Below, piece after piece: positions 25,800-42,039 of a DNA stretch of 64,000 bases. The stretch covers positions 80,393,072 to 80,457,071 of the forward strand of contig NC_052154.1 in assembly GCF_902713615.1 (NCBI RefSeq), given 5' to 3'. The position numbers were made by a program, and so were the translations under genes. Each line of letters opens with the position of its first letter. The first letter of the stretch is position 1. The DNA is from Scyliorhinus canicula (taxonomy: Eukaryota). Below the pieces are notes generated by a model, which saw only the letters and a program-made list of their open reading frames with translations, had not been told where the DNA came from and ran no database searches.

Positions 25800-25946
25800 T
25801 CAGGTTCTCGGTATGTCTTTCTTTGTCACGGTCACTTCTGCATACTCTACATGTTCGTCTTGTCGTTTAGAGTTCGATATTTTCTTAGAATCAGCGAGCT
25901 GCAGAGTGGCGTAAGTCAGCTTGTTATCTCCATTTCCTTGTTTAGT
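25800..25946 (-). pseudogene. Orphan cassette: terminal module 3 TKQGNGDNKLTYATLQLADSKKISNSKRQDEHVEYAEVTVTKKDIPRT-stop
   Basis: ctttcAG acceptor, open frame, ITIMs LTYATL and VEYAEV; homologous to 50361-50498. Confidence 0.8.
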
Positions 25947-26677
25947 CTGAAAGTAATATTTAATATCATCTGTTCATTCGTCAAGGCATTACTTGGGCAA
26001 CTGGGTTCATAAAAGACTAATCATTTTTTTTTTCTCAGTTTAAAGTCATATGGCCCATCAAGACTAAAGGCTCTCCTTGGAGCAGTTCCATCCCCTACAC
26101 TGATGGAGTAGCCTGGAAGGAAAGTGGCCACATAATTTCCTTTTCTTCCCCTTCAATCTGTGGGCCATTTTGTTGCCCCAGCTTCTCCAATCTAGCGTTG
26201 GAGCTAAAAATGCCCCCCCCCTCCCCCCACCACCACGCCGGGAATCATTGTTGCATCTCCTCTGCACATTCTGTAGGACTCGAATACTTAATATGTGGTG
26301 GCCAGAACTGGGTGCAAAACTCTGTGTCCTAAGCAAAACTTTTTACTCTTCACCTTTTGCTTGCCACTCCTGTACTAGCCAATCCTGTATTATGTCCAGC
26401 CATTGATGCAAATAGCTGTCCTGCACAATCTTTAGAACTGTGCCAGTAACTGGGTGTTACTTATCCCGAACCCTTCAGCCAAAGTCTATCACCTCACATT
26501 TTAAATTATATTTGCCACTTGGCTGCATATTCTTCTTGTTTGTGTTCTGATGCAGTCTATTGGTCTCATCCTTTTTTAACCATTCCTCTGAATTTGATAT
26601 CATTGGCAATTTATTAAACAGCAGGCAAAGAATTTCATACCGGTGATTATGTGGACATTTAAAGGGTTACCTATAGG

Positions 26678-27003
26678 AGTGGGCAGCACAGTGGTTAACA
26701 CTGCCTCACACCCCCAGGGACACTGCTTCGATTTTGGATTTGGGTGACTGGAGTTTGCACGTTCTCCCCATGTCTGTGGGTTTCCTCCGGGTGCTCTGGT
26801 TTCCTCCCACAGTCCAAAGATGTGCAGGTTAGGTAGATTGGCCATGATAAATTGCCCCCTTAATGTCCAAGTATGTGCAGATTAGGTGTGGTTTTGGGAA
26901 TAGGGTGGGTGAGTGGGCCTGGGTAGGGTGCCCTTTCAGTGGATCGGTGCAGACTTTCTGGGCCGAATGGCTTCTTTCTGCACTGTAGGAATTCTATGGT
27001 TCT
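26678..27003 (+). mobile_element. HE1/V-SINE-like SINE
   Basis: gggcagcacagtggttaacactgc head, V-domain and gaattctatg tail. Confidence 0.8.
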
Positions 27004-27391
27004 ATTTGTTGGTAGCGTAGGAGTTCCCCCTACAGCAGACACATGCTCAGTGAATTTAATAAACTGTTGTCCTTAGTCACCAGTCATTCGAACCCAGCAC
27101 TTCTACAACAGTATTCCGAATGTTGATATTGCAAACTACAGTCTTAAGCCCTAATTGTTTGGCCCCGCCAGCCCAAGTGATCTGCTTAGCCTATGGGGAA
27201 AGGCTTCAAGGTTCCCTTTTCCAGTTGTCTTCCCTACCACCGCCAATCTCTCGGACACGAGGCAAATATGAACCTTGGCTGAGCTCAGCCGACACAACCA
27301 GTTGGTTGACTAGACCTGCGACCTTCCCATTCCCTGCAGCTCAGTATAGTACTAAACTCTGATGTGTTTCAATTAATGATCTGAGCTGTAC

Positions 27392-27494
27392 CTAGGAATA
27401 TATGGTACTATATGAGGCTTGTGGAAACTGACTCTCCTCTGTCTAATGGCTTACATTTTCCTGGTGCTGGTTTCAGCTGGTGTTGGGAAGACTT
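27392..27494 (-). pseudogene. Orphan cassette: degenerate tyrosine module 2
   Basis: Positionally homologous to 51078-51188 (the flanking introns align). It is 103 nt long (frameshift), has lost the ITIM, and its end reads acc ata tat tcc TAG. Confidence 0.65.
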
Positions 27495-27798
27495 CTGTAA
27501 TATAAATACTTCCTACTCTTGCTAAGTGAATTTCTTATTTTGTGATTTAGGACAATCATTATCATAGCCAGCTCCGACCAGGAAATGAGGATAATAAGCC
27601 ACCGCCCTTTTGATATCGCCTTTGATTGCGACTTCCAAGCAAGTCACTGGGAGAGACCCTGGTTCTTTAGGACATTTTAAATTCTGTTCCATGAAGTCAA
27701 ATCTATCCTGTCCAATTTCAGCAATAACACTGTTAACACAATGTGGATCTTGCATGAAAATTGTTTGGACATTACTGGCCCCAATCCCTGTGTTCTAC

Positions 27799-39480: not shown

Positions 39481-39624
39481 CAATACATTTCCAGCTGGCA
39501 GAAGCGAATACAATGGAAACTTTTAAAACGAGAATGAGATGACATTGAATAAACTAAAATCAAGGGCGACGTGTAACAAGTAGGAAATTGGCCTAACTGA
39601 ATAGTCATTTCTAAGAAGTGGCGT

Positions 39625-40655
39625 ACACTGTCCCTGTGGAGTTTGCACATTCTGCTTGTGTTTGCATGGGTCTCACTCCCACAATCTGAAGATGTGCACG
39701 GTAGGTGAATTGGCCACGCTAAATTGACCCTTAATTAGGGAAAAAAAAGAACTGAGCACTTTAAATATATATAAAAAAAGGAAGTGGCATAGGCACAATA
39801 ACCTTTGAACAGGCAGCTCCTCAATTTATCAATGCATTTTAGCTTCAAGCTCATAATCTTCACTGGTGAGGGAAGGGGTTGGGGGGGTTTACCTCCAGGC
39901 AGAGGGCATTTGGGGCGGTCTTTCATTGCAGCAACATTCACGGCAGTGTAGTCATGGAGAGAGAGCACTCAGTGTCCACTGGCACACTTCAGGCCGGTGG
40001 GCACCGTGGGTCCTGGGGCTGCATGAACATGATTTTATGAAATTGAATAAAGGTCTTCTCGATCGCTTACAATATATATCGCTATTCCTCTCTAATCTTT
40101 GGGACATAAAGTACATTGTTGCCCTACTGCCTCTTCACTCTAACCACCTTCCACAGGATTTTTCTTGACGCCTGAAGGAAAGAGAAGAGATTGAATAACT
40201 TTCTGAATGTGCAAGCAAAATCAACATGTTTTCCATGCTAAACACTTTTTTTTGTAAGGGAAGGAGCCTTGAAAATGGAAATACTCTAGGTCCAGGGTTC
40301 GATCCCAGTCCCGGGTCACTGCCTGTGTGGATTTTGCATATTCTCCCCGTGTTTAGGTGGGTCTCACCCCCACAGCCCAAAGATGTGCAGGTAGGTGATC
40401 GGCCATGCTAAATTGCCCCTTAATTGGAATAAAAACAGAATTGGGTATTTTAAATTTATTTTAAAATAAAGTTAAAATCCCCTAGTCGCCACACTCCGCT
40501 GCCTGTTTGGGTACACTGAGGGATAATTCAGAATGTCCAATTCACCTAACAAGCACATTTTTCGGGACTTGTGGGAGGAAACTGGAGCACACAGGGAGAA
40601 CGTGCAGACTCCACACAGTCAGTAACCCAAGACGGGAATTGAACCGGGATCCCTG
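39625..40655. mobile_element. Cluster of SINE copies (+ ~39625-39778, + ~40288-40468, - ~40478-40655) flanking the orphan juxtamembrane exon
   Basis: V-domain and tail motifs. Confidence 0.7.
40128..40171 (-). pseudogene. Orphan cassette: duplicated juxtamembrane exon with in-frame stop, GVKKNPVEGG*SEEA
   Basis: 44 nt with intact splice sites, homologous to 54504-54547. TAG at 40142-40140 where the first copy has CAG. Confidence 0.8.
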
Positions 40656-40983
40656 ACACTGATTTACACTTCAAGGTCTGGAGCCGTCCTGATATGTTTT
40701 TAAAAAGTGGAACATTAAGTATTCCGAGTACAGCAAATTGGAGGTGTATAAATCGAATGAACAGTTCGATTAGGAAATAGAATATCTGCATTACAAAACC
40801 CCTCTGTACATTGTCATTTTCAATTCTCAATCACACAATGCTCATGTGTATCAACTTGATTCTTTAAAGCAGCAACGTGTTTTTGTTCCTCTATAACGAA
40901 TCATTATTCACCTGCCCTTTACGTTTTAACAGTTTATCTGGGCCTCAGGAAAGTAAAATATGCTGCAAAATAAAAGTTCTTAC

Positions 40984-41088
40984 CAGCTGGAGCTTTTGAT
41001 TTGAGTAGCGTCAAAAACATTGTCAACAGTAAAATAGCGAATATGCCGCCTGCTCCAACAGGAATGAGCGGAAGTCTGACACCAGGAT
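40984..41088 (-). pseudogene. Orphan cassette: duplicated TM exon DPGVRLPLIPVGAGGIFAILLLTMFLTLLKSKAPA
   Basis: Same length (105 nt) and donor as 55313-55417, ~75% identical by manual count. ORF open, but the acceptor is GAG rather than TAG. Confidence 0.8.
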
Positions 41089-42039
41089 CTCCAGGATCAG
41101 CAAATGATTGAAATAAAAACTGGAACATAGCGAGGATCATACACAGGGCGAGTTGCAAATGTGTCTCTCAGGATAATCACCCTAAACATCAGTGGAGCTC
41201 GACCGCTTATTTCTGTTAGCTGTAGCTGTACAGTAATTATAACGTTTATCAAACAACATCAACTACACGTTAATAATGCAATTTACCTTTAATAATGCAA
41301 TTTACCTATAGGATCCACATATGATTGAAATAAGAAACTATAAAACACCATGATATTAATACAGAGGCACGAGAGGGCGAAGTGCAAAGGTGTCTTTCCT
41401 GTTATTGCGTCCATTTACTCCAATAACGCTTTTATTTCTATTGGAAAAGATGTGCAGGTAAGGTGGACTGGCCAGGATAAAATTGTACAGGGATGTGCAG
41501 GCGAGGTGCGGTCACAGGTATAGGGCGGGGTTTGGGCTGAGGTAGGATGTTCTTTCAGAGGGTCGGTGCAGACTCGATGGGCCGAATAGCCTCCTTCTAC
41601 ACGAGGGATTCTGTGGTTCTACGGCAGGAGCTATACAAAGATTGTAATGCAGCAAACTACATCAGCTGCAAGCCAGTAATGCAATTCAAGGAGGAAACTA
41701 ATCTATAAAGACGCAGAAAGCTTCTCTCTGGAGTTGACGGCTGTTTGTTGAGAGGACAAGGGACCTACAGATTTCACTTTACCATACTGGACCAGATAGA
41801 TGTGTGCCAAATGCAGAGTGGCAAAAAGTCTTCCATCCTTCAACACTGCCAATCAGCTTCACCAATGAACACCTACTGCAGCTCTTAGTTGGGAACAAGA
41901 ACACCTCGTATTGCAAAACGCAGCATTATCAAACACAATCAAGCCACATAAAGCGATATTCTCATAGCTGGAGGTCGAGTTCAGGGAGCATCGAAAAGGA
42001 GAGAGTTAGAGAGGCGGAGATACTTTGGTGGGTCCTCTG

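Follow-up and report, generated by a model that had tools for sequence, protein, structure and literature searches.

A probable decapitated remnant of a second V-C1 inhibitory-receptor gene beside NUDT21 in the catshark Scyliorhinus canicula

Does a receptor gene of the catshark Scyliorhinus canicula command two alternative sets of transmembrane (TM) and signaling-tail exons, or is the second set the leftover of another gene? The earlier note on this window (the whole stretch of DNA analyzed, 64,000 nucleotides) had described one ectodomain followed by two such sets, and had proposed either that this ectodomain could be wired to both or that the second set is a paralog that lost its ectodomain exons. 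We argue here that the stretch probably belonged to a second gene of the catshark V-C1 inhibitory-receptor cluster, one adjacent to NUDT21, and is its decapitated remnant. The gene that carries the ectodomain, gene 1, is exactly identical to S. canicula RefSeq XP_038662960.1, and it pairs with the copy as follows.

50361..61560, minus strand: gene 1, intact, 8 exons, 388 aa, a receptor of the order L-V-C1-TM-JM-A-B-last
Gene 1 55417-55313 and copy 41088-40984, minus strand: TM exon pair, 105 nt each
Gene 1 54547-54504 and copy 40171-40128, minus strand: JM exon pair, 44 nt each
Gene 1 51649-51539 and copy 27909-27799, minus strand: exon A pair, 111 nt each
Gene 1 51188-51078 and copy 27494-27392, minus strand: exon B pair, 111 versus 103 nt
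Gene 1 50498-50361 and copy 25946-25800, minus strand: last exon pair
41089..41732, minus strand: remnant of the C1-TM intron, 5' of the copy's TM exon, where gene 1 homology ends

All post-ectodomain exons of gene 1 (5/5) are repeated 14-25 kb downstream with order and orientation unchanged, just as the earlier note had stated, and the exon pairs are joined in this by colinear direct matches: copy 40972-41285 aligns with gene 1 55301-55641 (78%, E 5e-79), 40735-40912 with 55117-55299 (E 1e-23), 40113-40200 with 54489-54575, 27625-27918 with 51353-51658 (E 4e-30), 27246-27402 with 50925-51088, and 25796-25968 with 50349-50522 (E 5e-28). Upstream of the copy's TM exon (TM2), 41089-41285 matches 55418-55641 at about 87.5%, and 41306-41732 is a partial repeat of the same piece of the C1-TM intron. 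Since the copy retains introns between its exons, homologous to those in gene 1, a processed (retro-copied) pseudogene is ruled out. Gene 1 homology begins within the C1-TM intron and stops a few bases beyond the copy's stop codon, which would fit a copy born truncated, that is, by a segmental duplication reaching only from this intron to the stop codon, such that it never had an ectodomain and has drifted neutrally since; with the age and position of the copy taken into account (see below), we regard such a birth as unlikely.

Repeat DNA lies both between the copy and gene 1 and inside the copy.

41733..50360, no strand assigned: gap between copy and gene 1, SINE- and LINE-like repeats plus the gene 1 3' UTR
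29879..39650, no strand assigned: LINE fragments with RVT_1 reverse transcriptase, two copies inverted

The claim that no leader, V or C1 exon stands between the copies held in two kinds of search. A tblastn run with the V and C1 peptides, as the earlier note had suggested, found no leader, V or C1 relic in 41089-50363, nor elsewhere in the window except in gene 1, and a family profile HMM applied to the six-frame translation recovered V and C1 in gene 1 only, the best match in the gap having E=5. An assembly gap had been named as a possible reason for the missing exons; the 64-kb window is free of N runs, so this is not the cause. In line with the earlier description of the gap as essentially transposon DNA, about 80% of 41358-49500 is similar to repeat copies elsewhere in the window (blastn by itself gives 19%), and Pfam found no domain in ten open reading frames of 41733-50360. 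Its repeat nature was judged by this likeness and by RVT_1 matches in the intron between JM2 and A2 (the copy's JM and A exons), which is LINE-swollen and measures 12 kb, as against 2.85 kb for the corresponding intron of gene 1. The activating-type TM that P0003 and P0166 carry has no coding sequence in the window.

The copied exons differ in their state of preservation.

40984..41088, minus strand: TM2 exon, 105 nt, phase 1-1, frame open, TM uncharged
40128..40171, minus strand: JM2 exon, 44 nt, AG and GT retained
27799..27909, minus strand: A2 exon, 111 nt, open, phase 0-0, family profile E 7e-7
27392..27494, minus strand: B2 exon, a relic lacking 8 nt relative to B1
25800..25946, minus strand: the copy's last exon (last2), 48 open codons plus TGA at 25802-25800, profile E 1.5e-9

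The five exons retain every base of their splice-site dinucleotides (18/18). TM2, which matches TM1 at 61% (tblastn), retains its donor GTAAGA and the AG of its acceptor, but the latter carries a G at -3 (GAG/AT versus TAG/GG in TM1). In JM2 a conserved Gln codon has changed from CAG to TAG at 40142-40140, 12 nt ahead of the donor, and this stop comes after 10 tail residues, in agreement with the stub of that length described before. Tyrosine motifs are present in A2 (VAYASL, TIYSQV) and in last2 (LTYATL, VEYAEV); the family-profile matches of the copy stand at E 1.5e-9, 7e-7 and 0.08, and A2 and last2 score slightly above gene 1's own exons. B2 has stops in all usable frames, its final codon has changed from CAG to TAG and its first tyrosine motif is gone; the destruction of the copy's exon B is an addition to the earlier account. 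Lesions thus affect 2/5 exons (the nonsense codon of JM2; the 8-nt loss and stops of B2), and no open reading frame runs across the TM, JM and tyrosine-motif exons. With a stop in JM2 and a frameshift in B2, the cassette is unable to encode an ITIM tail, and no receptor is encoded by the copy itself.

For the three open exons evolution is close to neutral, and they show no purifying selection. Between gene 1 and the copy their dN/dS is 0.82 (bootstrap 0.49-1.43), and differences by codon position number 15/15/19, with no third-position excess. Exon identity, at 78%, is not above that of the flanking introns (74%, and 87.5% directly upstream of TM2). Three observations, in turn, speak against the reading as a decaying relic: the intact splice-site bases, the profile scores of A2 and last2, and the lack of a significantly higher number of changes in the copy than in gene 1 (23 versus 15 assigned changes, p=0.26). 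When neutral drift of 0.11-0.15 per site was simulated, stops in 2/5 exons were the modal outcome, and TM, A and last all remained open with a chance of 15-23%. These statistics are compatible with neutrality throughout the divergence, and to that extent they also suit a copy that was truncated from birth. Its age, however, speaks against this origin. JM2 and last2 retain residues that are shared with Heterodontus and altered both in gene 1 and in its close paralog P0165, and the tail tree places the copy outside gene 1 plus P0165, while leaving undecided the order of the copy's split and the Heterodontus/Scyliorhinus split. With ancestral residues kept and this position in the tree, the copy is an old paralog, not a fresh partial copy of gene 1.

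The genomic neighborhood points the same way. The copy faces NUDT21, the exons of which were located with the human NUDT21 sequence and then confirmed by Pfam.

19240..22025, plus strand: NUDT21, final two coding exons (19240-19359 and about 22003-22025), in convergent orientation to the copy

The NUDT21 stop and the copy's stop are 3.77 kb apart, and the copy's last exon probably lies inside the antisense 3' UTR of NUDT21, for which 25122 and 27058 are candidate poly(A) sites. In the related shark Heterodontus francisci, where the corresponding locus was inspected, XP_067905823.1 (P0162) comes from a complete L-V-C1-TM-JM-last gene with its own V and C1, which stands tail-to-tail (convergent) with a 226-aa NUDIX_2 gene at a distance of 3.85 kb. 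Neighbor, orientation and spacing therefore agree between the two species (3.77 kb versus 3.85 kb), and the last exon of the Heterodontus gene, to which XP_067905821.1, XP_067905822.1 and XP_067905823.1 belong, shares LTYATLQLADSKK with the catshark copy. By gene order, orientation and spacing, which are the only basis for this assignment as paralogs are homogenized within species, the copy is the positional ortholog of the Heterodontus NUDT21-adjacent gene, which, unlike the copy, is complete. The Chiloscyllium, Mustelus, Hypanus and Mobula loci that were inspected had no NUDT21 within 10 kb. Since the complete Heterodontus gene has the same place, orientation and distance to NUDT21, parsimony favors an ancestor that was complete over a truncated birth. 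A complete second gene in relatives was also one of the two findings that the earlier note had named as refuting its swappable-tail idea, and this one is borne out by the Heterodontus gene.

Could gene 1 make use of the cassette? The earlier note had pointed out that TM2, like the C1 donor at 58176, is in phase 1, so that a junction would be possible, and the match of phases is borne out: TM2 is in phase 1-1, the AG and GT of the cassette are retained and the frame is open up to the TAG. Occasional splicing of C1 donor 58176 to TM2 at 41088, and on to JM2, would yield a 264-residue V-C1 membrane decoy with a 10-residue stub. Tail-less models do exist in the family, S. canicula P0165 ending by read-through of its JM exon, and the TM2 region (40900-41300) is partly present, with 9-42% of sampled words, in three small sequencing runs that we infer to be RNA given that, small as they are, they contain 57-73% of the presumed NUDT21 3' UTR stretch; the TM2-region word shares of 0.27 and 0.42 could, however, also stem from a close paralog. 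Against such splicing, TM2 occurs in no RefSeq isoform (the sole other isoform of gene 1, XP_038662961.1, skips the TM exon, and none uses the cassette), and RefSeq calls no coding gene within 10 kb of gene 1, a span that takes in TM2. The transcript would have to skip five exons, run past the poly(A) site of gene 1 and use an acceptor with a disfavored G at -3, and the TM2 exon is conserved no better than its own intron. Moreover, its stop would lie 12 nt ahead of a donor with more exons downstream, and AATAAA and ATTAAA are absent within 1 kb past JM2. Since the stop precedes the donor and no poly(A) signal is near, a C1-TM2-JM2 message, if spliced onward, is a predicted target of NMD by the 50-55 nt rule. 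A weaker point is that the 77-aa TM2 frame has no database protein match among length-limited candidates.

Alternative tails by splicing are familiar from CEACAM1-L/S and from Ig mu/delta and membrane/secreted 3' cassettes. These resemble the arrangement proposed in the earlier note in having one ectodomain, two downstream cassettes and matching exon phases, but in all of them the junctions are a matter of observation and each frame is both open and conserved, whereas here the junction is not known and the cassette is broken. The proposal that one ectodomain is wired to either tail thus finds no support, in view of the missing RefSeq isoform, the dead JM2 and B2, the lack of purifying selection and the predicted NMD. 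We give the decoy hardly any credence, and gene 1's messages most likely do not include the cassette on a regular basis.

A different use would bypass the dead JM2 and B2, with gene 1 or upstream paralogs using A2 and/or last2 as alternative terminal exons. JM1-A2-last2 and B1-last2 joins are in frame, and A2 and last2 have strong acceptors, ITIM/ITSM-type motifs and the best fit to the family profile. Heterodontus XP_067905821.1 is precisely such a join: its first 338 residues equal isoform X2, the final 45 match the last exon of the NUDT21-adjacent gene exactly, the step from exon B to this last exon covers about 134 kb, and the gene range is 149 kb, so one model gives this last exon to an upstream paralog and long-range use of such exons may occur. 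The model may, however, be a mapping artifact between near-identical paralogous exons, no matching catshark isoform is found in RefSeq, a selection signal is absent, and the NUDT21 3' UTR is the better explanation of RNA signal over 25500-28000; we hold such terminal exons to be very unlikely. It is likewise doubtful, if slightly less so, that the tail exons of a decapitated paralog have been kept as shared alternative terminal exons, reached by upstream V-C1 genes across tens to hundreds of kilobases. If true, tails would be swapped between paralogs at the RNA level, an unusual route to diversify the signaling of an old, little-studied receptor family.

The family in question was assembled from RefSeq models of S. 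canicula, Heterodontus, rays and chimaera, and comprises the shark V-C1 genes named "NCR3LG1-like", "SIRP-alpha-like" or "tapasin-related-like". The TM, JM, A, B and last exons of the copy have their homologs in the tails of these genes, but the copy differs from them in having no leader, V or C1 and a broken frame, and it is therefore a relic, not a member gene. Identity with UrIg, suggested by 9dmx as the best PDB match of the C1 domain, was rejected, as UrIg has many C1 domains and its paper makes no mention of ITIMs.

We thus favor the earlier note's own alternative of a paralog that lost its ectodomain exons, on the strength of the lesions, the near-neutral evolution and the complete Heterodontus gene. 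According to this decapitated-paralog reading, a presumably complete tandem paralog of gene 1 would once have stood next to NUDT21 in tail-to-tail orientation. The catshark lineage would then have lost this paralog's leader, V and C1 exons together with the greater part of its C1-TM intron, SINE and LINE DNA would since have filled the region, and LINE insertion would have enlarged its JM-A intron to 12 kb. The five leftover exons would then have drifted, one acquiring a nonsense codon, another becoming frameshifted and stop-filled, and three staying open by chance.

Unprocessed, truncated pseudogenes are known from mammalian paired immune-receptor clusters, such as KIR3DP1/KIR2DP1 and those of the LILR and SIRP clusters. 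Like the copy, they are partial tandem paralogs with introns kept in fast-turnover clusters of Ig receptors, and they share its nonsense and frameshift lesions and its transposable element insertions. What sets the catshark relic apart from the mammalian ones is that the whole ectodomain is gone while the signaling half survives, with its last exon 3.8 kb from a housekeeping gene.

The relic matters chiefly for annotation, in that it cautions against taking orphan TM and ITIM exons for hidden genes, and the locus is an example where paralogous exons may mislead gene models. With respect to the family itself, it speaks of a catshark V-C1 cluster around NUDT21 and OGFOD1 that turns over through partial gene loss.

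The minus strand of the window carries one intact V-C1 immune-receptor gene, gene 1 (50361-61560), whose leader, V, C1 and five tail exons join into an open frame of 388 residues, each junction having AG/GT. Its product is identical to S. canicula XP_038662960.1, 'natural cytotoxicity triggering receptor 3 ligand 1-like isoform X1', and the RefSeq range (11,200 nt) equals 61560-50361, so that the window belongs to the small-spotted catshark assembly GCA_902713615.2. Pfam assigns the protein a V-set/I-set and a C1-set domain. Without its TM exon the model matches isoform X2 (XP_038662961.1) exactly; omission of this phase 1-1 exon (55313-55417, minus strand) would be predicted to give an anchorless form still bearing the tyrosine-motif tail, and a TM-skipping isoform of this kind also occurs in Heterodontus (P0160). 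Self-comparison of the window bore out the earlier note in that all five tail exons are duplicated 14-25 kb downstream in the same orientation: six colinear same-strand matches (25796-41285 versus 50349-55641, E down to 5e-79) enclose five exon pairs on the minus strand, alike in order and phases.

Exons of gene 1, of its downstream copy (TM2, JM2, A2, B2, last) and of the neighbouring gene NUDT21
61560-61506, minus strand: gene 1 leader exon
61295-60990, minus strand: gene 1 V exon
58472-58176, minus strand: gene 1 C1 exon
55417-55313 (gene 1) and 41088-40984 (copy), minus strand: TM exon, 105 nt in both
54547-54504 and 40171-40128, minus strand: JM (juxtamembrane) exon, 44 nt in both
51649-51539 and 27909-27799, minus strand: A exon, 111 nt in both
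51188-51078 and 27494-27392, minus strand: B exon, 111 versus 103 nt
50498-50361 and 25946-25800, minus strand: last exon
496-597, plus strand: NUDT21 exon
2034-2129, plus strand: NUDT21 exon
19240-19359, plus strand: NUDT21 exon
ending with stop 22023-22025, plus strand: NUDT21 last coding exon

The TM exons of gene 1 and the copy are offset by 14.3 kb and their last exons by 24.6 kb, a difference due to about 10 kb of LINE fragments, with RVT_1 reverse-transcriptase matches, in the JM2-A2 intron; they include two copies in inverted orientation (31621-34135 and 38042-39478, 78-84% identity). The whole window contains no N runs.

The copied exons are in mixed condition. TM2 is open and has no charged residues, and its acceptor reads GAG|AT versus TAG|GG at TM1; in the YAG acceptor consensus, G is the least favoured base at -3. 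JM2 aligns with JM1 without gaps, but a Gln codon conserved in the family has become TAG at 40142-40140, which leaves the 10-residue tail GVKKNPVEGG, just the stub that had been proposed earlier. Skipping of JM2 would not rescue the tail, since the TM2-A2 join reads GGC TAG. A2 is open and retains VAYASL and TIYSQV, and the copy's last exon has 48 open codons with LTYATL and VEYAEV (stop 25802-25800). B2, whose lesions were absent from the earlier account, lacks 8 nt relative to B1 and no longer has the first tyrosine motif; stops interrupt both the acceptor frame and that of the surviving 3' motif, and the exon's terminal codon has changed from CAG to TAG.

It had also been suggested that C1 (donor 58176) could be spliced to TM2 and JM2, which would place the gene 1 ectodomain on a membrane decoy with the 10-residue stub. 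This did not find support: none of gene 1's RefSeq isoforms includes TM2, and the 10 kb downstream of gene 1, in which TM2 lies, have no coding gene called. A message whose stop precedes a later exon junction by over 55 nt is a predicted NMD substrate, and this would apply to a C1-TM2-JM2 message if it continued into A2 or the last exon. Within 1 kb after JM2 there is no AATAAA or ATTAAA. Sampled words from 40900-41300 were found at fractions of 0.27, 0.42 and 0.09 in three small runs, and not at all in about 15 other runs from this species. We consider the decoy very improbable, and only RNA data could close the matter. By comparison, 0.16-0.73 of words from 25500-28000 were found in 18 runs from six studies, which fits a long NUDT21 3' UTR reaching to about the AATAAA at 27058. 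The candidate UTR, probably 22003-27100 on the plus strand (about 5 kb), would run antisense across B2 and the last exon of the copy.

Upstream of TM2 the ectodomain is indeed missing, as had been noted. By tblastn of the V and C1 peptides across the window, gene 1 was the only match. A profile HMM made from 20 proteins of the family and searched against all six-frame pieces of the window matched V (E 1.5e-52), C1 (7e-59) and every tail exon of gene 1, as well as the copy's last exon (1.5e-9), A2 (7e-7) and TM2 (0.08); its top match in the gap 41089-50363 had E=5. From TM2 to 41285 the copy is homologous (about 87.5%) to the C1-TM intron of gene 1, and beyond lies a degenerate repeat of the same piece (41306-41732), at the end of which homology ceases. 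The intron piece is thus doubled (41089-41285 and 41306-41732), with a perfect 19-bp x2 tandem repeat at the joint (41270-41307). As it resembles gene 1 more closely than the exons do, the stretch 41089-41285 may be a gene-conversion tract. What remains of this gap looks like SINE and LINE DNA: about 80% of 41358-49500 resembles other in-window repeat copies when translated matches are counted (19% by blastn alone), and Pfam had no match in its ORFs.

The receptor family has many members in sharks, rays and chimaera, its automatic names are inconsistent, and our literature search found no paper describing it. It comprises inhibitory forms with tyrosine-motif tails and forms with charged TM residues and short tails (for example P0003 and P0166). 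P0165, a catshark paralogue on the same chromosome but outside the window, shares 93% identity with gene 1 across 270 residues; as modelled, it terminates by JM-exon read-through (…REEPVG stop) and is therefore without an ITIM tail. An OGFOD1-like gene lies 2.4 kb from it in convergent orientation. In the window, JM1 is followed by the same read-through frame, with AATAAA at 53907. The 436-aa model P0182 of Chiloscyllium plagiosum has two near-identical C1 domains and a tail with LTYATLQIADSKK but lacks a TM; exons from a pair of tandem paralogues may have been fused in it.

NUDT21, three of whose four exons listed above are backed by Pfam NUDIX_2, is convergent with the copy, the stop codons lying 3.77 kb apart. 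In Heterodontus francisci, XP_067905823.1 (324 aa), which consists of leader, V, C1, TM, JM and last exons, faces a 226-residue NUDIX_2 gene in convergent orientation at a distance of 3.85 kb, a nearly equal spacing. A relative thus has a complete gene where the catshark has a headless cassette, which is what the earlier note expected of a simple pseudogene; the positional match rests on order, orientation and spacing. Another Heterodontus model, XP_067905821.1 (isoform X1), spans 149 kb and ends at the XP_067905823.1 stop. Its first 338 residues equal isoform X2 (P0163), and the XP_067905823.1 last exon supplies its final 45 without a difference, so that an upstream paralogue is linked to the last exon next to NUDT21. 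True long-range splicing may lie behind this, or a gene-model artefact of near-identical paralogous exons. The model lends a modest probability to the idea that the A2 and last exons still intact in the catshark are reused by splicing, joins to which would be in frame; such reuse is not supported, RNA data alone could close the question, and we rate it as improbable, if slightly less so than the decoy.

JM2 and the copy's last exon share with Heterodontus G-KK at the JM start, LADSKK and YAEV, while gene 1 and P0165 have the derived DNNRNS, LADYSK and YAGV. In the tail tree gene 1 and P0165 group together (support 98/96), and the copy, this pair and the Heterodontus genes form an unresolved three-way split. 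It follows that the copy is an old paralogue and not a recent partial duplicate of gene 1. Over the three open exons dS is 0.32, dN 0.27 and dN/dS 0.82 (bootstrap 0.49-1.43), TM and A differences fall 15/15/19 on codon positions 1/2/3, and with Heterodontus as outgroup 15 changes map to gene 1 and 23 to the copy (p=0.26). Identity between the two is 78% in the exons, 74% in their 150-nt flanks and 87.5% in the intron directly upstream of TM2. When random substitution (0.11-0.15 per site) was simulated on the gene 1 tail exons, the commonest outcome was stops in two, and no more, of the five exons (P 0.34-0.36), and TM, A and last all stayed open in 15-23% of trials. The pattern of open and broken exons is what drift would predict; use of the exons is not required, and past constraint for a period is possible. 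The copy is most probably a decaying, decapitated remnant. That it was born truncated strikes us as unlikely; we favour, with moderate confidence, descent from a NUDT21-adjacent paralogue that was once complete.
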